DNA of 64,000 bases from Sminthopsis crassicaudata (Eukaryota): NCBI RefSeq assembly GCF_048593235.1, contig NC_133620.1, positions 318,633,765 through 318,697,764 of the forward strand, read 5' to 3'. Shown here one piece after another: positions 1,572 to 61,100 of this stretch (position 1 is the stretch's first letter; the number at the start of each line of letters is the position of its first letter). The position numbers were made by a program, and so were the translations under genes. The notes under the pieces are model-generated. The model worked only from the letters and a program-made list of their open reading frames with translations, did no database searches and had not been told where the DNA came from.

Positions 1572-2615
1572 CTCCGTCCTCTCCCTGGGGGTCACCCTCA
1601 CCATAGCAAAGATTTATCTTTTTTTTTTTTTTTTTCCCCAATTCTTTCCATTTGAAACATGAGACTGAAGCTCTCCCCTGGGAGTCCAAGTCTGGAACAC
1701 CTCCTAGCACAACTAGGTAATGACCGACTCTTTGCGGTAAGTTTCCGAGCCTCTTATCTTAATTAACCTTATCTAGATGAGAAGACTAATGGGGACAATA
1801 AAGCTATTATCTATCCTCCCCTAACTTGTTCGAGGCACTAGGTAAGTGCATAATAAAGGCACCGTGCCTGGCACTCAGCAGGCGCTTAGTAGATGCTTGA
1901 ACCTGACTTTGGGGCCTTTCTTGGGATGAATAAACGCTTGCAGACTATTGGTCTGTCTTTGTATCCTCATGGCTCGGCTCGAGACCTGGCACACAGCAGG
2001 CGCTTAATGCTTGTTGACTTGAGAAGCGCTCCACGGAACAAATAAAGGCCAGCCGGCTAATATCACTCGAAACTGCTAAGTAGAAGAAGGGGGATACAGT
2101 CAGTCTGGGATGCCCGGTCTGGGAAGCGGGTGATTTCGGGCGCACGTGGCAGCACAGGGGACGAGTGGGAGCCCGGCCCGGCGGGGATGGCTACCCGTGC
2201 CTGCAGCCGGGGCACGATGGGGGAGGGCAGGGGCCCTGCCGCCCACTCTCCCAGCTCCTCCAGGAAAGCCCAGAGTTTGTCTACTTCGCAAAGTGCTTCT
2301 CTTTCACTCCCCAGTGCGGCCCCTCCCTCCCCTCTGCTCCCGCTTTGCCGCATTCCCTCTCGGCTCCCCACTCCTCCTCCCCACCTTCTGCTCTCTCCTT
2401 CCTGCCGCACCAGGCCCCCTCCGTCCCCACCCCCAGGCAGGCTGGTACCGAGCGCCCTCAGCCTTTCCTCCCAATGGGCTTTAAGCCTCCTCCACGCCCC
2501 CGCCTCCTCTGCCTTTCTCCAGAAGGACACAAGCCCTGACGAATCGGTGCACGAGGACGGTCCGTTCGTCTCCGCCCCTGACGCCCTCCCCCGTTTTCTC
2601 CTCCTCTTGCTCTTC

Positions 2616-2624
2616 ACCAATCAG
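2616..2624 (+). promoter_or_regulatory. CCAAT box (NF-Y type, ACCAATCAG)
   Basis: ACCAATCAG in the CpG island upstream of exon 1, followed by a GC box GGGCGGG at 2638-2644. Confidence 0.5.
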
Positions 2625-2651
2625 AGACAGAGTGCGTGGGCGGGACGGCTG

Positions 2652-2664
2652 GTTGCTTAGCGAC
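2652..2664. promoter_or_regulatory. RFX X-box-like motif GTTGCTTAGCGAC
   Basis: Near-palindromic match to the RFX consensus GTTGC-N(2-3)-GCAAC in the proximal promoter. Confidence 0.5.
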
Positions 2665-2844
2665 GGCCGAAAGTGGGAGGAGGGAGAGCTGCCGGCAGGC
2701 CCGGGGGCGCTGCTATCCCTGGGCAAGGGGGCGGCGGCATCGGCGGAGGCAGAGGCGGTGTCGTGGTGGTAGTCGGCTCGGCAGCGGCTCGGGCGGCAGC
2801 TGCGGGCAGGAGGCGGAGCCGCGGGGCGGCGGGACTGGGGAGAC

Positions 2845-2851
2845 TATAAGA
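2845..2851 (+). promoter_or_regulatory. TATA-like element TATAAGA
   Basis: AT-rich TATA-like word in a GC-rich context, about 20 nt after a GC box (2823-2829) and about 30 nt before a pyrimidine-rich stretch (about 2874-2889) that could be the initiator. Confidence 0.4.
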
Positions 2852-2955
2852 GGTGCCGCGGGTGCTCCGCGTTCCACTCTTCTTTTTCCGGTACTCCGGG
2901 CTTCGCCTAGCCGTTGCTCCCACTCCGGTCTATGGTGCAGCCGGGACCCAGGACC

Positions 2956-3003
2956 ATGTCGCGCTCGGAAGAGGTGCACCGACTGACGGAGAATGTCTAC
3001 AAG
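2956..3003 (+). CDS. BAIAP2: BAIAP2 (IRSp53) coding exon 1, MSRSEEVHRLTENVYK
   Basis: Peptide matches the IRSp53 N-terminus (human MSLSRSEEMHRLTENVYK). Start context ACCATG; donor AAG|GTGAGC at 3004; phase 0. Confidence 0.96.
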
Positions 3004-5190
3004 GTGAGCCCGCCGCGCCTCCGGAGGGGGCAGCGCGTCCTGCCGTGCCCGCACCCGCCCTGGCGCCGGGCGCCCGCAGCCCCCGGGACCCGTGCCGCCG
3101 GCCCGTTCCCGCTCCGTGCCCCTCCGTGCCCCGGCGCAGCTGCTGTGCTCCGCTTCGCCCTGCTCCTGGCCGCCCCTGCCGCGGGGCTAATCCTCTCTTC
3201 CCCTAATTCCCTCGCCCCAGATCTGTGGGAGCTCCCGCTCCTGGAGGCTTGCTCCCCTAAGTTAGCTCCCCTCTGTCGCCCACCTCCCGAGGCGCCCGTG
3301 CCCTGGGCGGGCAGCTTCCCCAGAGCCGGGAGGTGCCCGGCGGGAGAGGCTCGTTCTGCTCACGCCCGGGGCGGCCCGCGTACGCGCCTCGTGGGGGGCA
3401 CAGGCAAAGCGGGGCGCTGTGGGGGGTGCAAAGGCAAGGAACGTGTCAGGGGCTTCCCCTCCGAGCGGCCCTGCCGCTGCCCGGGAAGCTGGGAATCCAC
3501 TTCTAAGTGCCTTTCCCAGCAGATCGAGTTCAGCTTAGGTCGAGATTTTCTCTCTGTGATCAGCCAAGCCCGCCACCTACCTACCTGTTCTTTAGTGGGC
3601 GGCTGTCCTGTGCTACTGACGCGAGGCGGACTCGGGGGTCTCTCCCAGTGCCGCTGTAGTCACAGGTGGCGCGCTGGCACGTCTGACCTTAAAGGCGGCT
3701 CTTGAGAGCGGGCGCCTTGGCCGTCGTGGTGACACTGAACTCTCGGAGTTCCCTGTGCTTCCCACAAAATCCTCCATAACTTTTTCCCCTCCGGGTGTGG
3801 GGAAGGGCTTTGTTTTTTCTGTTTTGTTTTTAGTGGTGGGGGAGGAGAAAAAATTCAGACCATCTTGTGTATAGTGAGTGTAGAGGATCATCCATTCCGT
3901 GAATAAAAAGGCAGGACAGAACATAGAAGCAAACAGAAATTTGCCAGTGGCCTAGAAAGCTACACAAAATAAGACTGGACAACATTCAGAGTAAGAATTA
4001 AGCTGTAGTTATCAGTTAACAGTTCCCAAGCGGCTGGAATTTTACTGTCTCTTCATGCCTTGCTAGGTCTTCCAACTGCTGTTATGCAAGTATTTTTTAC
4101 TTACGATTAAGATTTAATTCCTTCAGGGCTTTGTGCTGTGGGAAATTGCTAAATATTCTATTGGGGGGGGGCTTTGTGGGTAGGGGCAGATGAGTGGATG
4201 GATAATTTAGCTTATATAACTTGATGGTGGTAGTGGTGAGCCTAATTGGGGAGAAGTAATTTAAAAGCTGCTTCAGTGACAGTCAGTTCTGCTCTATCGA
4301 ATAGCCAGATAATAGTCAGATTCCTATCCTTTGACTTTTAAAATGCAGCCTCAATTCTGAACCTGCATAGCCCTGATGGATACCACTTCAGCATTTGAGC
4401 TCACCACCGCCCCAGCAAATGGGTGGTTCCAGAAACAGGAAGAAATCTCTATCATTTTTATATGTTGGANNNNNNNNNNNNNNNNNNNNNNNNNNNNNNN
4501 NNNNNNNNNNNNNNNNNNNNNNNNNNNNNNNNNNNNNNNNNNNNNNNNNNNNNNNNNNNNNNNNNNNNNNNNNNNNNNNNNNNNNNNNNNNNNNNNNNNN
4601 GCAGATCCAATCCATGGGGATCTGCTGAAAAAAAAAATAATAATTTTAGTTAGGCAAATTCCTGATCATCGGAAACATAATGCTATTCCTTTTTGTGCTG
4701 CTAGGTCTGAAGGTGAGGCAGTAGTCAGTAAGATTAGAATGGCCAGTATTTATATTGCAGTTACTGGTTTACAGCTAGCTTACCAAGTAGAATTGCAGTA
4801 CACTCACTCTCTGCAAAGCAACAGTTTTTGATTGCCAAACAGCCATGGCTGTGCCTTCTGAGTCAGTGGACTGTGAAGTAAACCCTTTTAACTCATTCTG
4901 GGGCATATTCCATGGAAGCTCCTGGGACAGCCCATTTGGTTTTTAACAAGAGTCTAAGAGACAGAATGTACTTTTAATAATTTGGCTTTTATTTCATAAA
5001 GCCCTTAAAACTGTAGCTGTAGAATTTGGAGAGAAATTTGAAGTTGATCTAGCTATCTAAATCAGTTTTGAAGACATATTAAGTCTTCTATTCCTTTGCA
5101 TAATTTCCGTGGTATCCTTTAGAAAGGATCAAGTAAGGAGTAAGCTCACTGAAGGAAACAGCTCTCTAGCTCCAATTTCTTCTCTGAAAA

Positions 5191-7949: not shown

Positions 7950-10400
7950 ATGAGATGAGTTGGTAGTTCTACCCTAAAGCAGCAAAAAACATTATTTCAT
8001 AGGATGTTTGGTCATCTCACTTTTTCATAGTGAAGATGAACTTTGGTGAACAGAGCATCAAACAGCTTATGTGTCAATATCTTATTGCAGTGGTTGAAGT
8101 TGAGATTTTCTATGAAAAAGCTGACCAAGATCTTCCAAGCTAAGATAATGGACTTACTCAGTGGCAAGATGAAGGTGGCAATGTGGAGGGCAGCAAAAAC
8201 TATATTGTAATGTATAATTGAGTATTGAGAAGAGATAGTCCAAAAGCTTGAAGATCACTGAGAAGAAACAACACACTTTTTACATGATAAATTCTTTCTT
8301 CCAAGGAGAGAGCAGAAAGACACTAGATGAAATAAGCCTTGAATAATATTACTATAAATGAAAATAATTACTTCCTAATAGATCTGAAACAACTATAGTC
8401 AGCAATCTATTATAGATGACTGACTGGTTAGGTCTAAGGGCAAATTCAATAACAAATCAGAAAAAGGGAGAAAGATGAGATGGCACTGTCTATGAGCTGA
8501 TCATATGTGCTGTCCATTCTGAAAAATGGGAAATGGGGCAGGGGGGAGAATAAAAACTTACACAGTTTTAAAAAAGAAGTTGAACTTCAATACAAAACAA
8601 TGAAGATGCAAAAAAAAATATTCCATAGCGAGAAAACACTTTATTTCCTTGCCAGGCAGAGACATGGCAACCAAGGGCACCAGTACTAGCTAATTTGCAA
8701 AAGATTATAGAGGGGAGATTAGAAACAGTGGAAAAAAAACAGTTGAGGAGAAAATTAGCCTGCCTAGAGCTAGAGAGCTTGGTGTGAGATCTAGCTAAAC
8801 CAGGTCATCCAAAGAGCATTTATAGATGAAACTATGAGGAGACAACAGATACAAAAAAGAAGTAGAGTTGCTTTCCATAATGATTTCTTCTCATAGATGA
8901 TGATATAGTTATCACCTCATTTGGGTAAACTTCCTCTCAAGATGAGAAAGAGTTCAAACATCAGGTAAAGTTAGGAAGAGTGGTCAGATTCAAAACCATG
9001 CAAAAGAAATCTATCCTGGAGGAAACATAATTTTGAAGGCATTGAAGAATGAATTTGCAAGATATTTAATTCATTTTTAAATTTTTTTTATTTTACATAC
9101 ATACATACATACATACATTTATTTATTTATTTCTGAATCAGAGAGAAAAATCAGAACAAAAGGGAAAAACCACAAGAGGAAAATTTTTCTTAAAAAGAAG
9201 AAAAAAAGTGAACATAGCATGTATTGATTTACATGCAGTTTCCATAGTTCTCTCTCCGGATTTAATGGCATTTTCCATCCAAAGTTTATTGGGATTGCCT
9301 TTTCAAGATATTTTAAATGGGAGAAGATTTCAAAAAGATGGAAAAGATTGGAAGTTAGAAAAATAAAAAGTGTTCAAAAAAATCAACCACTATTGTATCT
9401 ATATGCTTGCTTTCTCATTTACATAGAATATTTGTGTAAGGACATCCTTGAGGAAAATATGAGAAAGAAACAACCAGGTTTCTCTCTGTAGTTTTCTATA
9501 GTAAATTATACCTCCAGTCATGTAACTGACAGAGATAGAAAATGAGATCCTATTGCAGCTATTTATTTCAAAAAACTTTTACTTAGCTGAACAATATGCA
9601 GTTTTAAAGTCTCTAAGCAAGATATCTATTACATATATTAAAAGCAATCTATTAGAGATATTGTTGTTCATTGATTTGCTGCCAATTCCATTAACCTCAA
9701 CTTCAAAACCAAAACAAAGAGCTGTGCTATGGCGACTATCTGGGAGGTTGTTCTGCATGGAGCCCAAGTAAAAGAGGAATTCTTTATCAATGGTAAAGTC
9801 TTCCAGATAATTCCATTTACAAATGAGTTTGTGCTTATGAGCAGGCTCTTTACACTGGAAAAGTAAAGTTGGTTAAAAAAAAATGCACTTTGCTCAGATT
9901 ACAACATTCGATGTAAAAGTCAGTTCCCTGAGTTAATGAGAGACAGACACAGACACACACACACACATACTCACAGAGAAGCTAGAGCATGTGTGTATGT
10001 GTAAATTTATAAAAACTTGGGTGATTACTGTAAATGGATACTGCATTTTGAACCAGAATCAAACAACAGAGAGAAACTAGCTGAATTGAACTTGGAAAAC
10101 TGCACAGAACATTTGATGTTCTTTGCCACAAGACCTATCTAGAAACCTTCTAGCTCAGAATTGTAGAGCTTCACACTCTGAATCAAACTGTAGGTGACCT
10201 AAAAGACAATGACAAGCTGTAAGCAGACTGCAGATTATTGGCTGCTATGATTTTTGTGGAAAATAGCATGTGAAGGATATATTAAGGCTACATGTGACTG
10301 AGAAAGGTAATTGAACTAGTCATGTAATAATAGTGAGTGGATGATACACAGTCAGACTCAGTGCTATATCACTAACTATTGGAGGCCTTCCTCTGGTTCT
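7950..10400 (+). mobile_element. Highly decayed RTE-clade LINE interrupted by an L1 3' fragment (about 9080-9300) and microsatellites
   Basis: Scattered remnants resembling the RTE endonuclease (VEIFYEK), the RT DD-I-V-I region (about 8895-8915) and the RTE 3' ORF end (about 10075-10395). Recognised by eye; boundaries approximate. Confidence 0.5.
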
Positions 10401-10439
10401 TTTAACTTCTACTTCTAGACTTAACTAGACTATTACAGT

Positions 10440-11625
10440 TACTGATGAGTATGCTGACTTTGTGAAAAATGGCTTAGGACAGCTGTGTGTGATGGAACAT
10501 TTTGTTCCTTAGGAGCTGAGCACAATTTCTCTGGAAAGGTGTGTTCAGTCCTGTACGAATGATTGGAGGAGGTAATAGATACCTGCCTCTCTGACCTATA
10601 TACTTCATCAGCATAGTGTGGAGGAGGCTGCTGGAAATGGAGAACCAAGGAGTGCCTCCAATGCATTTGGTAGATCCATTTAGGAGAATTTAGGGCATCT
10701 AGGTGATGCTGTGGATAGAGTGCCAGGCCTAGAATCAGAAAGACTCATCTCTCTTAGTTCAAATATGACAAATATGACATTTACCAGTTGTCTGACCCTG
10801 GGCAAGTCTTAATCCTTTTTACCTCAGTTCCCTCATTTGTAAAATGAACTGAAAAAATAAATAGCAAACAACTCTAGTATCTTTGCCAAGAAAACCCCAA
10901 GAAGAGCTCAACATGACTGGAAAGTGACTGAATTATGGAGAATTAATAGATATACTTAGTTAAGAGTCACATGGGATGAGAAAGCACAAATGAGTTTCTA
11001 TATTGGAAGGATATTCAAACTGGTGTGATCATTGATATATCAAAGTTCCTTGAACATGATTGGTGCCAAATGTTTGTTGAAAATTGTTCTTGGGTATGTG
11101 GACGCAGATGACTTTGAGTGTGGCATTTCATCCTGTCATGTTTGGGAAGCTGCTTTCTTGTCAATCACTTGCTTTCCTATGAACTGAGAAATCATTTTGG
11201 TAATGTGCTTTTGAGGTTACTTCTGAAAAATATTGCCATTTCTGGCATAATGACCAACTCTTGCCTCAAGTAAATGTGTTACTCTGAATATACCAGCTGT
11301 ATACAAACTGGCAGGATCTGAGTCAGACTGGTTGTATCTTTGGTTCATTTTCAGCGTGAATTTGAGTTTGACCTCCATGAGTAGCTATAACCTATAGGCT
11401 GAATTTCTTTTGACGCTGGTAGTGGGTATTTTAACTTTATGGAAAATGCCTCAGGACAGCCGCATGTGATGTGGGAATTTGCTCCTTGGGAGCTGAATAC
11501 AATTTCTTTGGAAAGGTATGTTGTCTTGTGTTAGTGATTGGAGAGGCAAGAGAATACCTGTTTCTCTGACCTATACTTTATCAACACTGTGAGGGGGAGG
11601 CAGCCAGCTTGCAGTAATGGAAAGA
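10440..11625 (+). repeat. Two paralogous ~180-nt segments (about 10465-10650 and 11440-11615) of an RTE-related non-autonomous repeat; the first copy is split by a SINE
   Basis: Shared text aggacagc..gtgatg..gagctga.(c/t)acaatttct.tggaaagg..gattggag..tacctg..tctctgacctata; the first copy continues into an RTE-like 3' tail. Family not named. Confidence 0.5.
10692..10935 (+). mobile_element. MAR1-type CORE-SINE
   Basis: tRNA-like head, core (ctcagttccctcatttgtaaaatg) and gtatctttgccaagaaaacccc tail. Confidence 0.8.
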
Positions 11626-14124
11626 CTGTTGAATTTGGAGACAGAGGAAAAGTTTGTGTAAACATGGGCAAAAAAAATCACTTATCTTTTCTGGAAATGA
11701 AGGCATTGAATTAGATGGCTCTGAAGAGCCCTTTAGTTCTGAGTTTATGATCTTATGACACATTTCTCCTCCTCCCTCCCTCCATTCTACTTTGCTTTCT
11801 GAAGGTATAGATGCTGTGGAGAGTTTTGGGCAGCAGAGGCACTCACTACTTTGCTTCTGATCTCAGCCTTATGGTTGACTGATCTCTTACCTCTTATGGT
11901 TGACTGAAAGATCTGACTGAAGTGGGCATCGTTTCATGGATTTTTACTTGGAGAATATGTATTCAGTAATTAGAAACACCCATTTGTAGGAGCAGAGAGA
12001 TTGCAGGTAGGTGTTTCTCTGAGGCAATGGGTTTCTCAGTAGAATGAAAAATTGCTATCTTGGAGAACATTTGGATTTAGGGTTAAGGACAGACTGGTCA
12101 CTGCAATTCCCTTTCCTCATGCAGTTCTTCTACATCCTCCTCCCTGCCAGCTGTTTTTTTTTTTTTTTTTTTTTTTCTATTTCCAAGAACTAGAGGCAAG
12201 AGAGGGAATTAATTCCATGATGCCTTGTATGGTACTTGAGGCAGAAAAAGACAACTTATACATTATAGTGACTGCTGATCTGATCTTGTCCTGTTCACTA
12301 CCTAACATCTCTGAATCTCCCAAAAGACATATGACTCAGTAGTGTGTTACTGCTCTAATAATGTCCTGCATGATAACATTTTGAATTCAGGCAGTTATAT
12401 TAGATATTATGTCTAGGTACAAAAGAGAAGTTAATTTTCAATGTGGAATTTTTGGATGGGCAAGAGTTTTAAAGTTGGTTGAGTTTCTTCAATCTTCTTA
12501 CTGAGAATTTGATTTCAAGCAGGGGCCCAGAGCTGGGCAGAATTGCTTGAAGTGAGTCCTCAAAGAGTCAATTGTAAGAATGAATATGGTTTTCATATAT
12601 TCTAGCATGGAAGGAGATGTGTATGTGCGGGTGTATGTGTATGAACTAAAAATAATTACAGAAAATATGCTCCGAAAACTCAGCACCAATATGCCTCTTT
12701 CCTCTGTCCAAGTCTGTGTCTTTTTTGGAATGACATCCCTTGAGGGCAATGACTTTTTCTGTGCTCAGAATGTTGTGGGAGTGATATTGATAGAATCTTA
12801 ATTTGGGGGGCTGGGCAGGAGATTCCCTCCTTCTGCAGCTGAAGCAGGGTGAGGCCATGCTTGCAACTTCCCTTTGGTTAATGAAGCCAGCCCTTCCAGT
12901 GACAGCCATTGCTTTGTCATCCCCAGGAATGGTGTAGGTGGAAGGGCTGGTACTTGCTGCCTGCTACCACTTAAGTGTGACAAAGCTGTCTCACTGATGG
13001 TCCTGCTGGAGCAAGAGTAACAATTGGAAAAGTTGCATCTGTGTCATGGTGGCTTCAGTTGCTTACTTTTGTATTGACTTTTATCTTCTCCTATCAACAT
13101 GCTTGGATATAATCGAGCCAACAAGGGTCTTCTTTCCTAGTCCATAGCTTACCCCCAAAGATTTTTTTTTTTGAGGCATCATGATAAGGAAGCCTTTCAT
13201 AATTATTTTGCAAAAAAACTGTGCTCTCCTTGGAAAGATTGTACTTAATGAGATGGTGGCAGAGCTGTCAGCCTCCCCCTCACTGATGCTGCTGCTACAA
13301 TCAGCTGCCTACGTCCATGTAGTAATTACAGAGCCCAACGGAGGGAGTTGGCACCTTCCACCAACGTAATCCCACTTCCCCCGTGCTCTGATTCATCCTT
13401 ATGTACCTTGTAACTCTACAGCTGCTAGGATGGCTCTCATAGGATCAGGCTTCAATTCCAGGTGTCAGCAGAGATCTGACACATGCAAGGCACAAGCCCA
13501 GCCCAGCCAAGCTGGAGAAGTGTTGGTTAACTGAGAGAATGTTTACCCTGGAAAACATTCTGAAGCAAGTCTTCCTCTCCCTCAAGGTCAGGGGTCTGTT
13601 TGTTGGGGGGAATACATATAGAATAAGGTCTTTTGGATATTCTTTATTGGTTGGGTATTGTGTTCCAAGGAGCTGAAAGCTAGTTATTGTTTTATCTTGA
13701 ATGGTGTGAGTGAATTTGCTTGATTTCTCTTTCCAGTGTATGTATGTGTTATATGTTTTCCTTCAGGTATTTGCCTTAAGAAAAGCAGCTGGGAGTCCTT
13801 ATCTTCCCTGGACTGACAACAGTAAGATGATGTGATAATGACCAGGCTTTGTTGGTTAGCTCTTATGGCCTGAAGAAGAGGTTTTGCCTGTTTGTAAATC
13901 CATTCAACCAGCATATGAAGGGCAAGGCTTGGCTAGGCCTTTTTACAGCTTTGGATTTGGTAGGAAGGTGCAAATAGTCATGGTGAAAGCTAAGGGAGAG
14001 GGATTTGGGAATGGTTAGGCTGAGACGGAAAAGGGATATGGTAAATACCTCAGATTCTCTTTCCCCCATGGAGTTTCTTGAAATTTTGCACAGGCACTTA
14101 TACCTTCGGAAGCTAATAATTAAT

Positions 14125-18487: not shown

Positions 18488-20318
18488 GATTAAATATATT
18501 TTAGTTTTGCTTAGTAGAATGCCCTTATGGGAATAACTTCCATAGTGTAGAAAGGTTGATCATTCAAATTGAAGTAGGTTTTTCATTTATTATTTTATTT
18601 TATTTTTTACTTATTGCTGTTCCTGAATATGTTTTAGAGATTTCTAGCATATCTTCTTTTGGGCAATAATAATGCCTGACATTTATATAGCAGTTTAAAA
18701 TTTGCAAAACATTTTCCTTATATTATCTCGTTTAATTTGGCAGCAGCTGCTTTGCTAGAAATGTTCCACCTGGCATGGGAGGGTAGGGGGGAATAAAAGG
18801 TGTAATGGTCTCAGACTATCCTGTTCCTGCAGCCCAGCCTACTTAATCATTAGCATAATGAAGTTTCTTTTCTACCAGAAGCCCAGCCCACTGAAACTAT
18901 AGTTCATTATCTTAACTAGAAAAAGGGTGGGATGGTCTGGTATGTTCTAATGGGGCAAATGGCTATCTTACATTGTTTGACTATTAAGAAATAATAATGG
19001 AGACTTAATGAATGGGTTTCTCCACATTTGCCACTGCAAATGACAAACTTAACAGTTATAAATATCATACAGCATTGTTATTATACTTTGGGTAATTCTT
19101 TATGGAGCTGCAGTTGTAGTAGTCAGAACAGAACTTTTCTTGTGTATTTTCTGCTTAATTGTAGTAATTTTTCTGTTTTCAGGCTATTATATCAGTGCTA
19201 TTTTTTCCTCTTAATTTCAATCAAATAGCAGGTCTGTCTTTATGACAACTTTAAGATTTCCATAGCAGCAAACTGTGATTTTATTATAAAAGCAATTGGC
19301 TGGGAGAATATCAGGTCCAGTTTTTCTGTAACCATAGGCAAAAAGTGGTTTGAATACAAATTTCATACACACAAGGAATCAAACCCCTTCTTAACAAAAT
19401 AGTATGGTTTGGGAATGAAGTTTATTATTTGGCCCAAGTCAAGGCAAAGATTGAAAATGTCACATTGGCGACTAGTGACCGGGTTATGGTGTTTTCCTAT
19501 TGAAGTCCTATATCTGCAGGATGCCAGGCACTGAGACAGGAAGGAAGTGACCTAGCTGTTTAATCTTAATGTTCAGACTTTGCTGTGTTCCCTGCCCCTC
19601 ATCTGAAGAGGAAATTCAGTAATGTTCTTTTGGCTAAATATGCCATCCCTGAATTATTCTTCACCCCCCTCCCCCAGGTAGGATTTGATTTTGTCCCTTT
19701 TTTTAAAATTCACTACAGATTTCTGGTGCCTCAGCATGCATAGACATTGATATATTCTCAGAGATCTACATAAGTAAAATGGAAGCATTGGTAGTTCTTA
19801 GCCATCATAAAAAGGTTTAATGAATTGAAGATCTGTTTGTTGGTGGACTGTTATCTAAAGATCTACCTGAGCTTGGAGAGGCTTATTGATAAAGGGGCTG
19901 ACTGGATCCAAAAAGTTGGCTATGAGATGGTGACTTTCTTTTTGGCCACTTTAAAGACTATAAGAGCTGTGGTTTGCAATAGTGGAGTGATTACTTAGAC
20001 CATTGAAATCATAATTCCTTTGAAGAAAAAAAAATATTGCCACTATATTGGGAACTCTGTGAGAACAGAAACTGTCTTACTTAATCCTTTTAGCTCTACC
20101 AAAGCCCAGCACAGTGCATTATATAGAGGAGGTACTAGTAAATGGATCTGAAACGAAAGGTGTTCATAGATGATGCTCGATAGCGAGAATTTCCTTAATT
20201 CCCTTTGGGAATAATTCATATGCATAACATTTTTTGAGACAAAAACAAGCAGGACCTCTTAAGGGTACACATTTTTCCTTCTGATAGATGTTTTGGTTTC
20301 TGACTTTTTCCCCCCAGT

Positions 20319-20884
20319 TGTTAGGTTCTTACTGGATGCTAAGTCAGTACTTAACAATTCTCTAGCTCAGGGTTCACAGTTTTAGTTCACACCTTTAAAA
20401 GGAGTTCTGGAAAGGCGTTTACACACCTTTAAAAAGGAGCAAGTTCATTGGTCAATAAGGAGTTCCCACAAGCCCCTGGGAGTACCCACAAGCCCATTCT
20501 CTGGGAGGGTAAAAAGAGGAATATTGAGTCTGAGGAGAGAGTTCTGGATTGCGTCATGGAGAAGACATCTCGTGGATTTGCAAGTCCAGCAATCCCACAC
20601 TTTTGGAGGGGAAGAAGAGGATTCGAGATTCTACCTTCGCTCTGGCTGGAGGCTCCAGAAGCCTCCCAAGAAACCTACTCACAGAGGAAAAGATTATACA
20701 GAAAAAAAACCTCCTTCCAGAGAAAGATTATAGTTGAGAGACAATCAGAACATTTATATTTTGGCGCCCACAACATGGGGCAAAGACTTTTGCTTATCCT
20801 GACTAGGACTGATTCTGAGCCCTTCACAGGAACTAGCCCGGACTTTACATTTTGGTGCCCGAACAGGCTAGCCCAGACTTTACA
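20319..20884 (+). mobile_element. Solo LTR (566 bp) related to the 41 kb provirus LTR, with two PBS relics inside U5
   Basis: TGTTAGG...TTTACA termini; 6-bp TSD CCCAGT at 20313-20318 and 20885-20890; core promoter segment (ttcattgg...gcccattctctgggag..taaaa) shared with the 41 kb LTRs. Confidence 0.88.
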
Positions 20885-21341
20885 CCCAGTGAATTATGGG
20901 AGACTTTGGAAAGGGAAAACTATGCTTCTTTTTCATTTTTTTCCTTTTGTAGGGTACCAGCCTATTTTATATCATAGAGAAGGAGTTGTGTTGAAGAACT
21001 AAATGTTCCTTTTAGTTTTTAAATTTATGCTATTGACAAATGTCCTGCAGGATTACCAGTGGTTGAGAACTGATATACTGTGGGAAAATGGAAATCTATC
21101 CCTTCTTTCAGTGTCACTTTTTCCCATTCTTGCCAGGTGACTGACATAGTAAAGTATTTGCCAGTTCACCAAATACTTTGGGCAGAAAAGTAGGAAGCAG
21201 AAGGAGTGGAAAGGATACTAGACTTGGAGCTGGATGGTTCAAATCCTTGTTCTCCCACTTACTATTTTGTGTGACCTTGGGCAAATCTGAGTTCAAAGCC
21301 AGACTCAAGACACGTTGTGGTAGTTTTAATGTAACCCTGAG

Positions 21342-29088: not shown

Positions 29089-31984
29089 AGAACTTATATT
29101 CTGCTGTGGGTTGCAAAGATATATACATGTGATCTTTTGAGTACCACTTAACAGAGATAGCAACAGAGATTTCTGGCGCCATGTGAACATCCTTGAAGTA
29201 TGCTAGGAGTACATTCCCTGAATAGGGGACAGCTTATTCAAAGGCTTAGGAGTGGGAAATAATGGACTATATTTGGGAAACATCCAACAGGCCATTTGAG
29301 CAGGAAAATAAAATGAATGGGGAGTCATGATGGAAGTTTTTAAAAAGAGCTTTATTAGGAACCCAGAGAAAAACAAAACCAAAAAAAAAGTCTAGAAAGC
29401 GACAAGTTAACAGAACATTTCTATTAATAAGGAAACTATAGTCTAACCTCAGATTAGCTTGCCTAGCACAGTTTATCATGTACCTAATCTCAAATTCCTT
29501 TTCATAGGATTAGAGCTTTTAGAAAAGGGAGGAAGCTTGTTCTAGTCTCCTCATTTTATAGATGAAGAGACTGATAAATGTATTTTAACTTTTAATATTT
29601 TTTTAAACAACCTCGTGAGGTAGGCAGAATAATGATTGCTTGTCTCCGTTTTACAGAAACTAAGGCTTAGCTAAGTAATTTGTTCACCATCATACAGATA
29701 GGAATGTCTTGATATTCAAAAGCTTTCTCATAAATAACTTAGTCCTGGTATCTTTCCTCTAGAATCTGAACTCAGTCTCTTTAGTGGTCTTATAGCCTCA
29801 GTTGGATTCTAGCATCCCCAGAAACCTCTTCCAAAGATTATTGATAGATTGCTTTTTCTCCTCAGGTTTCTAAAATCATGTTACCTACTTCACTCTTGCT
29901 TTTCTTTTGCTTTATGCAAAAGTTTCTATTATTAAGTTTCTTTTAAGTTTCTATTAAGTTCCTTTAGATCTTAACCTATTTTGTGTGTCATGAAACCCTT
30001 TGGGAATGTATAGAGACCTTTGAACTCTCTTTCAGAATACAGTTTCTAAATGCCCCCCCAAAATGTGTTGATTACAAAGGAACCCAAAAGTTAGTGAAAA
30101 TTGAGATGTGATTTTTTTTTTTTCATCCAAATTTATAGACCTCAACTTAAGAGCTCTTGCTCAAGTTTTTAATATCACAGAGCTCAGGTAACTGAAAAAC
30201 TTCACTTTTTTTCATTCTTAAAATCCTGTTTTCATTGTTTTGAATTGATAAATATTTACTAAAACAAACATCTCCAAATACATGGTAGAAGAGGAGAGGA
30301 TTGGTCATGAAACTGCAAATCTCTATTATGTATGGCTTGCTTTTCTTTTTTAAGAATAAAACTTTTACTATATTATTTTCAAAGATATCCTGCTTCTTTG
30401 TGGACCCTTTTGGTTTCTTTCTGTACATTTTACNNNNNNNNNNNNNNNNNNNNNNNNNNNNNNNNNNNNNNNNNNNNNNNNNNNNNNNNNNNNNNNNNNN
30501 NNNNNNNNNNNNNNNNNNNNNNNNNNNNNNNNNNNNNNNNNNNNNNNNNNNNNNNNNNNNNNNNTTTCCCCTTTCTTCCTTCCCTTCCCCCTNNNNNNNN
30601 NNNNNNNNNNNNNNNNNNNNNNNNNNNNNNNNNNNNNNNNNNNNNNNNNNNNNNNNNNNNNNNNNNNNNNNNNNNNNNNNNNNNNNNNNNNNNNNNNNNN
30701 NNNNNNNNNNNNNNNNNNNNNCTTTAGCTTCTTTCCTTCTTTGTTTTTTTTCTTTCTTTCTTCCTCTCTTTCTCCCTAAACAAATTCCTACAGTGTTTAT
30801 GTCTGAAAATCTAAATCTTATTCTGCAACTCAAGTTAATTACCTCTGTCAGAAGAGCATGTTTCATTGTAGGCCATCTGGAATGTTACCTTAATCACAGT
30901 TCTTAAATTTTTAAAAAGTTGTCAGTTTTTGCAATGTTTTCATCATATAAATTGTTCTTGTTCCATTTACTTAACTTTGCATCAGTTCATAGCAAGTCTT
31001 TGTATGTTTCTTTGAAAACCTTTTTGTCATTCCTTATGGTAAAGTAATATTAATTATTAATATTATTAATTATATAAAATTATGTAAAATTATATTAATA
31101 TACCACAATCTGTTTAATACTTCCCAGTTACTAGGTACTTCTTTACCTTCCACTTCTTTCATCTACAAAAAGGACTGCTATAATTTTTTTGTAAATATGG
31201 GTCATTTTTCTATTTCTTTTATCTCTTTGGGGTATAGTGGTATTTTAGATCAAAGATATAGTTGTAAATTGCTTTCCAGAATGGCTAGCCCTTTTGATAA
31301 TGCTATCAAAAATACACTAATATGCCTTGCCAAGGCCTCTTCAGCAATTGTAATTTTCCTTTTTTTTTTTTTTTTGGTCATCTTTGCTGCTCTGATGGAT
31401 ATGAAATGGAACATCTGAATTGTTTGAATTTGCATTTTTCTAATTATTAGTTATTTGTAGCATTTTTTAAATGTGGGTTTTGACACCTTGAAAATTACTT
31501 CTTGATATTATTTGACCATTTATTAGGGAATGGTTCTTGTTCTTATAAAATTGAATCACTTCCTTATATATTTTGGATGTGAAATCTTATCTTAGAAACT
31601 TTCTACAAGTTTTTTTTTCTCCCCTTGGTAAACTATTTCCCTTTTAAATTTTAACTGAATTGATTGTGCAAATGCATATAAGTTTTATATATTAAATTTT
31701 TTATTTTCCCTTTTATCTTCTCTGAGCCTCTCTATCTCTTCTTTGGTCACAAACTCTTATTTTGTTTTCCTTGTTCCTCTAATTTGGTTATGATATGACT
31801 TTTTATGTTGTTTTGAGAGATTATTCTATATTTGACTTCTACCAGGCTATTTTCCAGTTTCCCCCACAGTTTTTATCTCAGGATTTGAGATCTTTGAGTT
31901 TATCAAACTCTATAGGCCTCTCTGTTCATTTTCCTTTGTACATTGTGTACCTAATCTGTTCTATTAATCAACTTTTGCATTTTT

Positions 31985-41038: not shown

Positions 41039-41443
41039 TGTTAGGATTACTAGGTGAGAACTCAGGTTGTCTGGACAGTGACAAGGTGAGAATTCAGGTT
41101 GTCTGGACAATTACAAGGTGAGAACTCAGGTTGACTTGATGGAAGGAGCAGGCTCATTGGCTGAGGTGGTTCTTCCCAGAAGCCCTTGCATTATCCCACG
41201 CCCATTCTCTGGGAGAATAAAAGAGAGGACTCCCAGAGATAGAAGAAGACTCTGCATTACATCAGCCCTGACGGGGCTCTCTGCAGGAAGGGAAGTCACT
41301 TCTAAGGACAAGAGTTAACAGCAACTGTCTGGAGACAACGGTTCACTACAGGAAGAAGAATCTGTCTGAGAGATTTGAGTAGACACAGCAGATCTCTTCC
41401 CAGAGAGCAATCCAGCAGCTTCTGGAGACGACAGCTCGCTACA
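41039..41443 (+). repeat. 5' LTR (405 bp)
   Basis: Starts TGTTAGG, ends CTACA, followed by AT and a PBS; homologous to 44036-44445. Confidence 0.95.
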
Positions 41444-41445
41444 AT

Positions 41446-41463
41446 TGGCGCCCAACGTGGGGC
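41446..41463 (+). other. Primer-binding site, tRNA-Lys1,2 (CUU): TGGCGCCCAACGTGGGGC
   Basis: 18/18 complement of the 3' end of vertebrate tRNA-Lys(CUU)+CCA, 2 nt after the LTR end. Confidence 0.95.
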
Positions 41464-41514
41464 AAGGACTTTTGCTTATCCTGACAAGAGGAGCTAGACC
41501 AGACCTTCGCAATT

Positions 41515-41532
41515 TGGCGCCCGAACAGGGAC
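41515..41532 (+). other. Second primer-binding site, tRNA-Lys3 (UUU): TGGCGCCCGAACAGGGAC
   Basis: 18/18 complement of the 3' end of tRNA-Lys(UUU)+CCA, the same sequence as the HIV-1/MMTV PBS; preceded by CA-ATT (41510-41514). Confidence 0.92.
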
Positions 41533-41594
41533 AGACACGGTCCTGATTCCAGTGGAAAAGCCTCCCATCCAGATCTCAGTCTCTCTGACCCAGA

Positions 41595-41603
41595 ACCGTG
41601 AGT
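41595..41603 (+). promoter_or_regulatory. Putative retroviral major splice donor ACC|GTGAGT
   Basis: GTGAGT at 41598-41603 in the leader between the PBS and the gag ATG, the usual position of the major splice donor. Confidence 0.6.
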
Positions 41604-41700
41604 AACAAGGAAACTTTGTTAAAGATTAAGTGAGCGTGCTAATAGATAAATAAGGAACTTAACTTGTTAAGGGCTAAACCAGGAATCTCTTATAGCTGAA

Positions 41701-43570
41701 ATGGGGCAGATGTTAGCTATATTCAATCCCTGGACCTCAGCCGACTCAACCCCAGCCCCAGAAGCAACCTCAGCTCCACCCCCATTCAGGAGTGGTACTA
41801 TAGAGAGTATAATCAACATAATTGAGGAGCAGAGTTTACTTGTAACCTGGGTACAGATTGCTAAACTCTTGGCTGCATTAAGATGCACATCCCCTTGGTT
41901 CTTAGAGGAAGAAAAGATAGATGTAGATAAATGGAAGCTAGTGGGATATGAAATGAAAGAATTTCAAGCAAAAAATGGGCCTCGTTCAATTTCTGCAGAA
42001 GTATTTTATATCTACAACATAGTTCAATTAGCCTTAAACTATCAAGCAAGTTGTAGGAGAAGGAAAAGTTCTAAAAATGAACAGAGGAGGAAGTGTGAGG
42101 AAAAAAGGAAAGATCAAGATCTTTCCCTAGAGCAAGAGGATTTAAATGAGGAATTATGGTATGATTCTCTTGAAGAAGCTTCAACCCTGCCTAGAGAACA
42201 GATTATTGACAGGCCCACATCAACCCCACCTTCAGAGATGGAGGAAGAAAGAGGGGAAGAGGCAGAAACACAAACAGAATTGCCTGTGAAGCAGCCTAAA
42301 CCTATGACAAGATTAGAAAAAGCATTGGTTAAAGCTAAGAGAGAAGGACAGGATATAAGTGATTTTATACATGCATATCCTGTGATTGAAGAGATTGACT
42401 CTGTAGGTAAAAAAAGGAGAAGATATGCACCTTTAGATTTGAATAAAATTAAGGATTTGAAAAAAGGTTGTACCCTTTATGGGGCTACATCAGCTTATGT
42501 CAAAAATGTTACTAGATGGTTTGTCTTATGAAGTCCTAACCCCGAATGATTGGAAATCCATAGCAAGGACATGTCTGGAACCTGGAGAAAATTTATTATG
42601 GCTTGCGGAATTTCATGAATTATGTAAAATTCAAGTCAGATGCAATTTGGAAATAGGAGTTAACACACAATTCACTTTTGAGCACTTAGCTGGTGAAGGT
42701 CAGTATGGAGAGAATTCGGAACAGATTAATTATACCATGACAATATATGAACAAATTGCTAAGGCTGCAATAAAAGCTTGGGGTGTCCTTCCTGGACAGA
42801 AAGATCGTGGAGAGGCTTTCACTAAAATACAGCAAGGTCCCAATGAACCTTTTGCAGATTTTGTGGGACGTTTGCAAACTGCTGTCAAAAGAACTATTGG
42901 AGAAAATGCAGCTACAGAAATAATGACCAGACATCTGGCTAAGGAAAATGCCAATGAGATTTGCAAAAGAATTATATGGGGATTAGACAAAGATGCTCCT
43001 TTAGAGGAGATCATAAGACGCTGTGCTACAGTGGGAACAAATGCTTTTTACACCCAGACAATGATGAATGTGGAAAGGCAGGGTCCCTCCTGGCAAGGGA
43101 CTTCTAGAGAAACTCGGCGATGTTTTCAATGTGGAAAAATTGGACATCTAAGAGCTCAGTGTAGGTATGGAGATACAGTGAGAAGACAGGGTGAAAGAAG
43201 ACCTAAAACCCCATGTCCAAAATGCAACAGAGGACTCCATTGGGCATCAAAGTGTAGAATAATTCAGGGAAATGGGATGAGGGGCCCAGGTCCAGGGCCC
43301 CAGGCAAAAAAGACTTGGGGCATGATGGCAGCTGATGTTACACCCAAAGAGCCTTTAGAAGGTCAGGACTCTGATGTGATCAACCAGCAGAAATGCAATC
43401 ACATGGCAGAAAGGGATTATCTGATAGTCAGCCAAAAGGCAATCAGATTGCAAAAATGGATTACACTTGGGGAGAATACAGGCCTTTTAAACCAACAGGG
43501 CTGTGTCCAGTGCAAACAAATCCAATGTAATTGCCAGATGATGAGAAGAGATTTAAAAAGTGGTAAATAG
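41701..43570 (+). pseudogene. gag: Betaretrovirus-like gag interrupted by one +1 frameshift near 42502-42506 (ORFs 41701-42531 and 42479-43570)
   Basis: MGQ myristoylation-type start; MA-like WF..W..VG motif; CA with YGATSAY/LTPNDW and MHR QGPNEPFADFVGRL; NC knuckles CFQCGKIGHLRAQC and CPKCNRGLHWASKC. Removing one A gives a 622-aa ORF. Confidence 0.93.
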
Positions 43571-43727
43571 AAGGAAATTAGATAAGTTGGCTGCCTGGGA
43601 GAGAGGGTTTGCTTGTATTTCTTCAGCAGGAGAAGGAATCAGATGGGTGCCAATGAGTCATATTCGCCTTGTCCATCAGAGAAAGACAGAAAAAGAGAAA
43701 GACCTCAAAATAAAGGAGAAGATCTAA
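43525..43727 (+). pseudogene. pol: Integrase C-terminal remnant of pol
   Basis: Translates as RDLKSGK*K.../LDKLAAWERGFACISSAGEGIRWVPMSHIRLV, matching the IN C-terminal W.GPD..WGRG(F/Y)AC..RW(I/V)P pattern, with a TGG>TAG stop and a 1-nt shift. Confidence 0.75.
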
Positions 43728-44019
43728 GAAACATCTTACACCGAAAGAGCATGGCTAATAAAAAGACTGTTAAAGAACTTTAAAACCAGCAGGAATCATT
43801 GGACTTCCTCACACAAGATGAGACTAATGGACAATGGACTTATGGACATTTATAAATTTTCAATTTATGATTATTTGATTATGTTATTTGTTATATACTT
43901 CTAGCATGTGTTATGTTACTATGTTACTATGTGCTTATGTAATTTATGTAATTATGTGTAATACTTCCCATATTGATAGATTTATGTTTCAAGGTCATGA
44001 CTGTCCTATGTTCTAAATC

Positions 44020-44035
44020 AAAAGAAAGGGGGAGA
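44020..44035 (+). other. Polypurine tract AAAAGAAAGGGGGAGA
   Basis: Purine run directly abutting the 3' LTR TG; typical of betaretroviral PPTs. Confidence 0.92.
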
Positions 44036-44445
44036 TGTTAGGATTACTAGGTGAGAACTCAGGTTGTCTGGACAGTGACAAGGTGAGAATTCAGGTTGTC
44101 TGGACAATTACAAGGTGAGAACTCAGGTTGACTTGATAGAAGGAGCAAGCTCATCGGCTGAAGTGGTTCTTCCCAGAAGCCCTTGCAATATCTCACGCCC
44201 ATTCTCTGGGAGGATAAAGAGGACAGCACTCCAGGAAGAGGGGAAGACTCTGCATTGCATCAGGCTTGACGGGGCTCCCTGCAGGAAGGGAATTTCACTT
44301 CTCTGGACAAGAGTTAACAGCAACTGCCTGGAGACAACGGTTCGTTACAGGAAGAAGAATCTGTCTGAGACATTTGAGTAGAAGACACAGCAGATCTCTT
44401 CCCAGAGAGTGATCCGGCAGCTTCTAGAGACGACAGCTCGCTACA
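44036..44445 (+). repeat. 3' LTR (410 bp)
   Basis: Preceded by the PPT; starts TGTTAGG, ends CTACA, followed by the TSD. Confidence 0.95.
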
Positions 44446-57335: not shown

Positions 57336-58160
57336 TAGGCATATCTTGAAGATATTTTGGGCTCAGTTCCAGACCATTGCCATAAAGTGAATGTTGCAAT
57401 AAAGCAAGTCACACTTTTTTTGGTTTCCCAGTTCATACAAAAGTTATGTTTATCCTGTGCTGTAGTCTATTAAATATGCAATAGTATATTGTCTAAAAAA
57501 AAGTTCTCGTCTTAATTAAAAATACTTTATTGATAAAAAAAAAATGCTACCTACTATCTGAGCCTTCACACACCCACCCCCCCCCCCCCCACCCCCCGGT
57601 AATCTTTTTGCTGGTGTTAGGTTTGGTTGTTGAAAGAGNNNNNNNNNNNNNNNNNNNNNNNNNNNNNNNNNNNNNNNNNNNNNNNNNNNNNNNNNNNNNN
57701 NNNNNNNNNNNNNNNNNNNNNNNNNNNNNNNNNNNNNNNNNNNNNNNNNNNNNNNNNNNNNNNNNNNNNNNNNNNNNNNNNNNNNNNNNNNNNNNNNNNN
57801 NNNNNNNNNNNNNNNNAGTCAGTGGATCGTCAGAACACACACAACATTTATTTATTAAGATTGCTGTCTCATATGGGTACAATTCATGGTGCTCCAAAAC
57901 AATGACAAAGTACACTTTAAATCCTTTAACGAAGATCACTGATTATAGATCACCACAACAGATATAATTATAATGAAAAAGTTTGAAATATTGTGAAAAT
58001 CACCGTAATGTGACACAGAGATACTATGTGACTATATGCTCTTGGAAAAATGGTACCAAAAGATTGCTCAATTGCAGGGTTGCCATAAACTTTCAGTTTG
58101 TAAAAAATGCAATATCTGCAAAATACAATAAAGTTAAGTGCAATAAAATTAGTATTCCTG
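57336..58160. mobile_element. Tigger1-like (Tc1/mariner-pogo) non-autonomous DNA transposon, partly in an N gap
   Basis: Degenerate TIRs (tAGGCATAtCT...AGTATtCCTG) followed by TA; both arms follow the Tigger1 consensus as I recall it (gttccagacca...aagttatgttta; agatcactgat...gaaaaagtttgaaatatt). Confidence 0.82.
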
Positions 58161-61100
58161 TAAATTACTTTCCTTTATAAAGCATAGGACTTTCTTTTGT
58201 ATAGTATTCTTTTTAGGGAAGCATTGGAGGGTTAAAATGGTTTGGAGAAAGTGACTTTTCTACTGTCATGCTGGTCATGTGACTTGTAAGTTCTCCCAGG
58301 TTGCAGTGGTGATTTGCAGAATATATTCTCAGAATAGTTCTTGTGACATGACTGAGAGACATATATTCATGCAGAGATGAAATGAAATGACTTGCAAAAG
58401 AAGAGAATTGTCAGAGCAGGCCCTTGAGAAGTCTGAAAAGGGCCTCTAGTTTCTTGGAGGCTTTTAAGGAGTTTCTCTGTGTTTTTAGGTATTGCTTAAT
58501 GACTTAACTTATCTGAATATGCTTTGAGATGTTTAGATGCTGATGGTCACAATTCTTAATTATGTATTCAATTGTTATAAATAAGTATGATAGAATGAAC
58601 AGATATTAGACTAAAGCTTCAGACATTCAGCCTTGGAAGCACTTCCATTTCTTAGGTTATCCTTCAGCAATTAACTTGATCTGGTCTACTGAGTCATTNN
58701 NNNNNNNNNNNNNNNNNNNNNNNNNNNNNNNNNNNNNNNNNNNNNNNNNNNNNNNNNNNNNNNNNNNNNNNNNNNNNNNNNNNNNNNNNNNNNNNNNNNN
58801 NNNNNNNNNNNNNNNNNNNNNNNNNNNNNNNNNNNNNNNNNNNNNNNNNNNNNNNNNNNNNNNNNNNNNNNNNNNNNNNNNNNNNNNNNNTGGGGATTTT
58901 CCTGACATTCCTGCTAATTTATTGGGCCCTAAGTAGACATCATATCAAAGGCAAAGAACAGCAGTACCTGAAAGATGGAAGTTCACAGTTTTACCAAGGC
59001 TGGAGCATGTGTTAATTATATTGGCATTATAGAATTTAGAACAAGAAAATATCCTGGACAGCATCTAATTCAGCATCTTCACTTTATTGAACAGGAAGTT
59101 AGTGAAATGCCCAACATCATATAGATAATAAATGATAGTCATGACTGGGGACCTAGGTGTTCTTACTCTAAATTTAGTTTCCTTTCCACCACATCATGCT
59201 GTTTCTTCCGGTTTCAGTGCTGTCCATTGGTGGTTAAATCATAATGGTTCAGGATAGATTTTCCAAAACTAACTTGTTAGTTTGGTTCTGGTTGAGTTAG
59301 GAGTCAGTTGACTTGGAGACAGATTCAATTTCAGGTAACAGAACTGAGGCAGCATCAAAGGCCATGACACTGCATTTCTGAGATTCTCTGAATGTTCTTT
59401 GCTGGTGTATTCATTGTTTTCTTGCTTCTAAATTGACTTAAATTTCTGGTTTTGAGTAACCTGGTCATATGGGTATTTTTTAGTTATTTTTTAAGGACAT
59501 TTCTGGGATTAAGGGAATGGTGATGGTTAGGAGTAATTTTATATTTTGCTTTGGTATTAGCTCAGGTAACATTTCAAGATCATATGTTGGTCTATGATGA
59601 GACCATCATTATGGTCTCAAAATAGTTATACTATTACATGATGTTCCCATAATGGCATCCAAGAAGCTGTTATATTATTTAGTAAATCTGTGATCTTACA
59701 ATAAGAATTGATTCTATTAATGCATGTTAGATGTATTATCCCTGCCAAGGGGAACTGTCAGTTCACCTGTGATTACTCTTCTCCTTTTTCTCTCTCCCAT
59801 TTTGAAAAAAGATTTGAGAAGTACTTTTGGTTTTAGAGTACTGAAGTTCTACTACTGTTTTGGAATCATTTTGTCCTTATGCTTAAGTCTTGGAGCTGAA
59901 TAAGCTATGTTTTAGATGCTTTAATATATAGTAATGTTAGATTAACCTTCTTTTCTCCCAAATACTCAGTGGATTCTTTGTACCCTGCCTTTTGCCACTT
60001 ACAGGGTAAAATGCAAACTTGACCTGGCATTCACATTGGTTTAGAATCAGACTCCAATTTACCTTTTCATGTTTGTTTCATATTATCTCTCTTCAAATAT
60101 TGATAATCCATTTAAATTAGATTAATAGTTGTTCCCTGATCTGGTTCTTCCCTCTCCTGTGTCTAATCAGTGGTACCTCTCATCTCTTGTACTTGGAACA
60201 GGCTCCCCCCCCCACTAGTTTGCTAAAATTTTTCCCTGTCCTAAAAGCCCATTTCAGGTGTCATCTACTTCACAGGGTTTCTTTGAAACTTTCCTCTCTT
60301 AAAAATAGTTCCTTTTTTCCGTTAAGCTCTTGTCATTCTGTGATCTCTTATAAACTTAAAATTACAGTTTCCATTATGTTTATTTGAGTACATTTCTTAT
60401 TACTGGAGCATTGTTCTTATTACATTGTAAAATCCTTGAGGGCAGGCAATGTAATTTAACTTTTTCTATATTACCTATATTTCTACCCATTACATGCCTG
60501 CTCTGCCCCTCCCCCCCAAATGTCTTGAACTCAACTGGAACTTAGTATACGTTTATTGAGGAAGCTGAAAACAGGTGACCTCTCTGAAGTTTTTCTCCCT
60601 TACTTATGATTTCCGTCAGTGAAACCTACAAATATTTTTTGGCTTTCCCAGAGCTTCATTTGTGTCATTCGGGGTTAAAGTGACTGTTGATTTCATTGGA
60701 AATATACCAAAAGTATAAAGTACCATTAGGAGTTACAGTCAGCATAGGAATCTAGTTATATAACCAGAACTTTCATTCATGTCAGTGAAGGAAAAGTGAC
60801 TTAAGCAGGATTGTACCACTTCCTCTCTTTGGCTATATGGCTCTGATACTTCCTGGAATGTGCAGTGATTCCTATTTTCAGATATGGCTTTAAAATTTCC
60901 TTTATGAATGTCCCTCAACCTTCTACTATTATCCCAAGGAAACAGATCCACCCGTGCTTAGGAGTTTAGCAGTAGTATGGGCAAATTGGCAGATTTAAAG
61001 AAGAAAGGGAAATGGCTGCTGACCATTCCCCCTGCCTTTTTTTTTTTTTTAGTTGCTTTAATGATTTGACAAGGCAAGGTCCAAAATGACTAGAACCATT

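Follow-up and report, generated by a model that had tools for sequence, protein, structure and literature searches.

The boundaries of a long terminal repeat (LTR) are normally treated as fixed by a single primer-binding site (PBS); where two PBSs lie in one leader, priming at the downstream site should carry the upstream one into the LTRs. Here we describe an element in the dunnart Sminthopsis crassicaudata that probably records such an event. It is a 566-bp LTR-bounded element at plus-strand positions 20319..20884 of the window, the whole 64,000-nucleotide stretch that was analysed (assembly GCF_048593235.1, contig NC_133620.1, positions 318,633,765 to 318,697,764), and it is the remnant of an endogenous retrovirus (ERV) of dasyurid marsupials that was betaretrovirus-like (class II, ERVK-type). 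To our knowledge, the tools that find LTRs and PBSs presume that no PBS lies inside an LTR. Retroviral vectors with two PBSs were reportedly engineered by Voronin and Pathak in 2004 (as cited in PMC4227088); those are laboratory constructs, whereas the dunnart element is a natural germline fossil whose priming step we infer.

Among natural systems, PBS switching between tRNA-Lys1,2 and tRNA-Lys3 has been called common in SERV (PMC8775094). The dasyurid lineage resembles SERV in that both PBS types alternate among close relatives. In SERV, however, a single site is switched from one PBS to the other, whereas the dasyurid family carries both in series with a fossil U5 between them, and its LTR boundary varies between copies. 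[quoted passage not shown] Unlike the sites described here, those of Gypsy have no link to the LTR boundary.

A survey of dasyurid ERVs excluded solo LTRs and makes no mention of primer binding sites or tRNAs (PMC11334065). The MEBrv clades that it describes share with our elements a dasyurid host family and recently active related copies with identical LTRs, and the LTRs of the subfamily that we call A1 (405-468 bp) differ little from the 469 nt listed for MEBrv 3, a likeness to that clade by length alone (PMC11334065). Class II solo LTRs in general resemble the element in their TG...CA ends, 6-bp target-site duplication (TSD), U3 homology and tRNA-Lys sites in the family; the difference is that the last 126 bp of the element, two PBS relics included, match sequence that all of the related proviruses examined have outside their LTR. 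The literature that we searched yielded no natural ERV in which two PBSs follow one another or in which an LTR contains a PBS, which is no proof of novelty.

The element continues past the LTR end of its relatives

The element starts with TGTTAGG at 20319 and ends with TTTACA at 20884, and exact copies of CCCAGT, the TSD, abut it on the left (20313..20318) and on the right (20885..20890). Both ends and the TSD had been proposed in a first-pass annotation of this DNA, and all of those coordinates hold. The termini (TGT...ACA) show the TG...CA ends and short inverted repeat of class II ERV LTRs (TGTTAGG...CTTTACA), and the 6-bp length of the TSD is also that of class II ERVs and of the relatives described below. 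ERV-like sequence is absent from the 350 bp past 20884 and from the 600 bp ahead of 20319; nothing leader-like was seen downstream, where the first-pass annotation had held that ERV internal sequence would count against a complete LTR. We sought a paralogous empty site via the near flanks, which proved to be unique, and found none.

For comparison, we sampled nine dunnart and two devil loci around ERV-K-like Gag genes (~310 kb), which together with the window gave ~374 kb of dasyurid sequence. Nine proviruses, one in the window and eight at dunnart loci, have in common the layout LTR, PBS1, inter-PBS segment, PBS2. Eight of them (the window copy, L001, L002, L007, L015, L016, L017 and L018) belong to subfamily A1, and the provirus of L003, with the same dual-PBS layout, belongs to a second subfamily, A2. 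In this family A, the LTR end (...TACA) is followed by 2-3 nt, a Lys1,2-type PBS1, the segment, 3 nt and a Lys3-type PBS2; for the two types, the PBS letters agree with the tRNA-Lys1,2 and tRNA-Lys3 PBSs printed in PMC8775094. The segment measures ~50-70 bp, except in L003, which has a 48-bp duplication and a segment of 118 bp. Within the window the comparator is an A1 provirus at 41039..44445 (plus strand, TSD AGTTAG), with LTRs at 41039-41443 and 44036-44445, PBS1 at 41446-63, an inter-PBS tail at 41464-511 and PBS2 at 41515-32. In this copy the two LTRs are 91% identical; L003 has 94% identity between its LTRs, and the remaining seven proviruses have 97.8-100%. Because the LTR pairs are highly identical, the dual-PBS layout belongs to recently active elements.

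In 9/9 dual-PBS proviruses the LTR ends ahead of PBS1, at a site that we call module 1, and the 3' LTRs have the same CA end followed by 6-bp TSDs. The module-1 site also ends an A1 solo LTR and an A2-type LTR in L015, a solo LTR of a related family, B, in L003 (minus strand, 21138-20594, TSD TAAGTG) and a family-B 5' LTR in L007 (20373-20934), the last followed directly by TTT and a Lys3-type PBS. With these, 13 of the 13 related elements examined end their LTR at module 1, and the window element alone continues. Module 1 of the element (20740..20758, plus strand) aligns with the LTR end of all of these relatives, including that of family B (window 20740-58), and reads TA where they read CA. 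Unlike in family A, where the LTR ends 2-3 nt before PBS1, the TSD of the element lies 126 bp past the module-1 end, and these last 126 bp have their homologue in the leader of the related proviruses, with its PBS1, inter-PBS segment and PBS2; 20761-20867 matches the post-LTR leader of nine proviruses.

Upstream of module 1, the U3-like part (20319..20520, plus strand) is nearest to the LTR of provirus L003 (~71% over 200 bp): positions 3-201 of the element are 71% identical to that LTR, and positions 116-202 are 74-75% identical to the LTRs of the window provirus, so that the homology is to LTRs flanking betaretrovirus-like gag. It holds a possible CCAAT-like motif (CATTGG, 20446-51) and a possible TATA-like motif (TAAAAAG, 20510-16), both on the plus strand. 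A direct repeat with 101-bp spacing (20489-531 / 20590-632, 72% identical, together 20489..20632 on the plus strand) lengthens the LTR, which to judge from its sequence was enlarged through several internal duplications. More short direct repeats, spaced 34-36 bp, lie at 20388-20434 and 20668-20732.

Downstream of module 1 lie two PBS relics, both on the plus strand. The Lys1,2-type PBS1 relic (20762..20781) has a 2-nt insertion and one change relative to PBS1 of the window provirus, and the Lys3-type PBS2 relic (20853..20867) comprises the first 15 nt of that PBS with one CpG-type change (14/15 match). Both had been reported at these positions in the first-pass annotation and are borne out by alignment. 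Allowing <=2 mismatches, the 15-mer of the Lys3-type relic occurs twice in the window against 0.02 occurrences expected. A solo LTR in the strict sense consists of U3-R-U5 alone, with no PBS, and the element departs from that definition at both relics.

The stretch at 20782..20849 (plus strand) is a fossil R-end/U5 of another LTR type, which we call LTR-C, and its last 17 bp with a CA end form module 2 (20833-49, plus strand). TTT and the 15-nt Lys3-type match follow directly, and then comes module 3 (20868..20884, plus strand), a second copy of the 17-bp LTR-C-type U5 end (16/17) that abuts the TSD. The 17-mer CTAGCCCRGACTTTACA is in this way present twice, 35 bp apart, flanking the Lys3-type relic, and its two copies differ at one CpG alone (G/A). 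As in family A, PBS1 is joined to an LTR-C-type tail (...GGGGC/AAAGAC or ...GGGGC/AAGGAC, the slash marking the join), and a Lys3-type PBS follows. By blastn, 20761-806 matches 41445-88 of the window provirus at 89% (E 6e-11) and 20828-67 matches 41489-529 at 80%; the 22 nt at 20782-803 agree with 41464-85 at 21/22 positions. The first-pass annotation had recognized this match as a spacer common to both copies; the match stands, but the sequence is an LTR-C R/U5 tail rather than a spacer.

The segment between the primer-binding sites

By alignment, the inter-PBS segment is the last ~68 bp, after AATAAA, of LTR-C, an LTR type that occurs free-standing in dunnart and devil. We found LTR-C as a devil solo LTR (L006, minus strand, 36501-36148, TSD AGTAAT), as a dunnart solo LTR with its own TSD (L015, minus strand, 7438-7097) and as the LTRs of a dunnart provirus (L004, 9566-16451, TSD GTCAGT). 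What the segment has in common with these copies runs from inside the AATAAA signal to the terminal CA. Window positions 20782-849 scored z values of 13.2 (L006), 11.4 (L015) and 5.9 (L004) against the three LTR-C tails, and 0/2000 shuffles reached the score; a fourth LTR, from devil and more distantly related, fell short of significance (z = 2.1). Beyond positions 287-342 of the L006 LTR no similarity to the element was found, and the element, which starts TGTTAGG, has neither the LTR-C U3 nor its TGTAAAG-type start.

Since the "spacer" is the R/U5 end of a different LTR type, we have in the dual-PBS layout a recombinant stack and not a PBS duplication. The leader of family A thus consists of a newer LTR and PBS1 set ahead of an older LTR's final ~70 bp and its PBS. 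Homology with LTR-C breaks off precisely where the 18-nt PBS1 has its 3' end, within the LTR-C AATAAA; this junction would coincide with the end of plus-strand strong-stop DNA, which suggests an aberrant strand transfer between two co-packaged genomes. By group, family B has Lys3-type PBSs, LTR-C proviruses have the Lys1,2 type and family A has both. The LTR-C tail inside family A precedes a Lys3-type PBS; PBS type therefore changes repeatedly among close relatives.

Several further observations concern these leaders. LTR-C-type LTRs followed by Lys1,2-type PBSs were seen in L005 (minus strand, about 13800-13437) and L004 (9566-9886). In L003, the 48-bp duplication (9233-9329) repeats part of the LTR-C-type tail in tandem, and on the right it stops flush with the PBS2 start. 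L001 (9746-64), L015 (9746-64) and L016 (9745-63; positions approximate) have in common a PBS1 variant that is 19 nt long because of a 1-nt insertion and also differs by one change, together with a PBS2 of perfect Lys3 type; ARAGORN detected zero tRNA genes in the window and the 11 loci, which thus offered no host tRNA with which to compare this variant.

The left end of the element is of A/B type and the right end of C type, and the exact TSD pairs the two; the unit therefore integrated as one piece. Its right end, CTTTACA, is an exact inverted match to the LTR-C start TGTAAAG in L004, as would suit a functional integration end.

Origin of the element

We consider it likely that the element is the remnant of a dual-PBS class II ERV whose parent was primed at the downstream, Lys3-type PBS, so that its LTR was extended, and which was later reduced to one LTR. 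In the usual members of the lineage, minus-strand DNA would start at PBS1 and the LTR would stop just ahead of it, leaving behind PBS1 a leader made of the fossil U5 of the older LTR-C and then its Lys3-type PBS2. In the parent of the element, a Lys3-type PBS lying downstream of PBS1 would have been the starting point of synthesis. The strong-stop DNA would then have taken in the fossil U5, PBS1 and the regular U5, all of which would have been duplicated into both LTRs, and the old LTR-C-type U5 end (CTTTACA) would have become the right integration end. The provirus would have integrated with a 6-bp duplication and would later have been reduced to a single LTR. The last 35 bp may derive from a tandem duplication of the U5 end and PBS in the parent, with priming at the second copy; the 48-bp duplication in L003 is a precedent for tandem duplication at the PBS2 border.

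The 13 relatives end at the site matching 20758 and no ERV leader lies past 20884, which argues that the LTR boundary of the parent was downstream of PBS1. On this point the extended LTR proposed in the first-pass annotation stands; its account of the dual PBS gives way to the recombinant stack. The first-pass annotation had further suggested a one-way rescue, in which the lesions of PBS1 and of the module-1 end came before insertion. This idea is weakened by L001, L015 and L016, whose LTR pairs are 99.3-100% identical and which have a PBS1 insertion at the same spot together with module-1 ends, and the PBS1 lesion is not clearly disabling.

Several points weigh against this origin. The ~374 kb of dasyurid sequence contained no long-LTR provirus and no second solo copy. 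We have a single LTR copy, and the presence of PBS1 in both parental LTRs is presumed from it. Identity between the element and its nearest relatives is 71-89%, which indicates that the family to which it belongs is unsampled. Finally, the 35-bp terminal repeat has another explanation, namely the internal deletion of a provirus with a 531-bp LTR.

Such a near-complete internal deletion is a possible, though not a probable, origin. The element would then consist of a 531-bp 5' LTR (20319-20849) followed by TTT, by PBS2 as far as its first 15 nt and by the terminal 17 bp left from the 3' LTR; the LTR of the parent would still have extended past PBS1, to module 2, and neither a tandem duplication nor a third PBS would be needed. 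This deletion yields exactly the observed letters, and PBS2 lies 3 nt after module 2 in the related proviruses as it does in the element. A difference at a CpG alone is what one would expect of two LTR ends that diverged after insertion, and it fits a tandem duplication as well. However, both breakpoints would have to fall <=20 bp from the LTR edges, as a deletion at random is unlikely to do, and the junction has no clean microhomology (ACAGG stands ahead of both copies, with 2 nt missing). Solo LTRs are also far commoner than such remnants (64,546 vs 12,900 in devil; PMC11334065), and a tandem duplication at the same border exists in L003. We favour a 566-bp LTR over the deletion because of the breakpoint constraint, the commonness of solo LTRs and the L003 duplication.

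A broader version of the extended-LTR origin is more doubtful: a stack of U5-end and PBS modules that would have grown through LTR capture and through duplication events at the borders of strong-stop DNA, and in which the LTR boundary would move back and forth with the tRNA-Lys site that primes. The first-pass annotation had likewise raised a reversible switch, for which we have a hint alone, in that the L003 duplication ends at the would-be PBS2 strong-stop end in a short-LTR provirus.

It is improbable that the direction was the reverse, with a long, Lys3-primed hybrid LTR as the older form and the short-LTR dual-PBS families arising when PBS1 within U5 was used for priming. Polarity cannot be set from one copy, the PBS1 relic and module 1 of the element are the most decayed in the set, as suits an old element, and the L003 duplication flush with PBS2 hints at a former DNA end there. 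Against this order, the LTR-C homology break at the 3' end of PBS1 would correspond to the end of plus-strand strong-stop DNA made from PBS1, a position that would fit a recombinant born while using PBS1 and short LTRs.

We regard it as highly improbable that no boundary shift took place and that the element is a truncated ordinary provirus (a short 5' LTR with its leader to PBS2) next to a chance CCCAGT and a locally duplicated 17-mer. CCCAGT is not rare, with 22 plus-strand copies across the 64-kb window, but the exact repeat stands directly after the final CA of what is a copy of a true LTR end, where a 6/6 match has a chance of ~1 in 4096. Between 20651 and 21200 the motif occurs solely at 20885, and the left CCCAGT abuts an LTR start fixed independently by homology. 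Two independent neighbouring elements are ruled out by the TSD, whose two copies join a left end of A/B type to a right end of C type, and by the PBS1/LTR-C junction, which recurs in nine proviruses, each at another locus. A parent with short LTRs, of which a 3' LTR stub remained, is ruled out because modules 1 and 3 differ at most positions.

Gag-only proviruses and other features of the window

The A1 provirus in the window has a gag at 41701-43570 (plus strand) that is broken by one frameshift, and it is without pro, pol and env. Its Gag contains the domains Gag_p10, Gag_p24 and zf-CCHC, and the best protein matches are to ERV-K-like Gag of Sminthopsis crassicaudata (94-99%) and then of Sarcophilus harrisii. 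Gag-only proviruses of ~3.4 kb, likewise without pro, pol and env, make up a family with copies at 41039-44445 of the window and in L001, L002, L007, L015, L016, L017 and L018, at about 9280-12830 in each dunnart locus (to 15723 in L016); these dunnart loci are annotated as ERV-K Gag-like genes. The gag-only elements look recently amplified, because the LTR pairs at the seven dunnart loci are 97.8-100% identical, and they look non-autonomous. In devil, a gag fragment with its 5' part missing (L006, 47811-48436) is 83-86% identical in DNA to the window provirus gag; a family-A-like gag thus predates or crosses the dunnart-devil split. In L015, positions 1-1181 are an A2-type LTR into which two other elements are nested: the A1 solo LTR (598-1057) and a poly-A retroposon that has a target duplication of its own.

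Searches outside the dasyurid loci, in collections that contain no dunnart DNA, gave no relatives. A conserved 19-mer of the inter-PBS segment had 0 matches in viral contigs and 7 chance matches in bacterial metagenome contigs, a Gag-based scan of viral contigs gave no match, and neither did Rfam. We also sought a host gene in the window, where eight long open reading frames gave zero Pfam matches. Positions 2001-4000 are CpG-island-like (64% G+C vs 26-43% elsewhere), and no protein family was found for the long open reading frames of this stretch. The window has six runs of N, of 129-192 bases (1438-1571, 4470-4600, 30434-30564, 30593-30721, 57639-57816 and 58699-58890), whose flanks are not exon-border-like.

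Discussion

If our reading of the element is true, a germline fossil LTR with a PBS inside it is natural evidence that the choice of primer site can redraw the LTR. A redrawn LTR would mean a longer U5, with old signals buried in it. Further evidence for such an effect of primer choice comes from the young proviruses, which retain two tRNA-Lys sites of different type one after the other. An element with a PBS in its LTR also bears on how LTRs and PBSs are annotated. The recombinant leaders of family A show how recombination can stack new LTR and PBS units ahead of older ones. A movable boundary, if true, would give these retroviruses a natural route to LTR growth, to PBS switching and to escape from PBS-targeted silencing.
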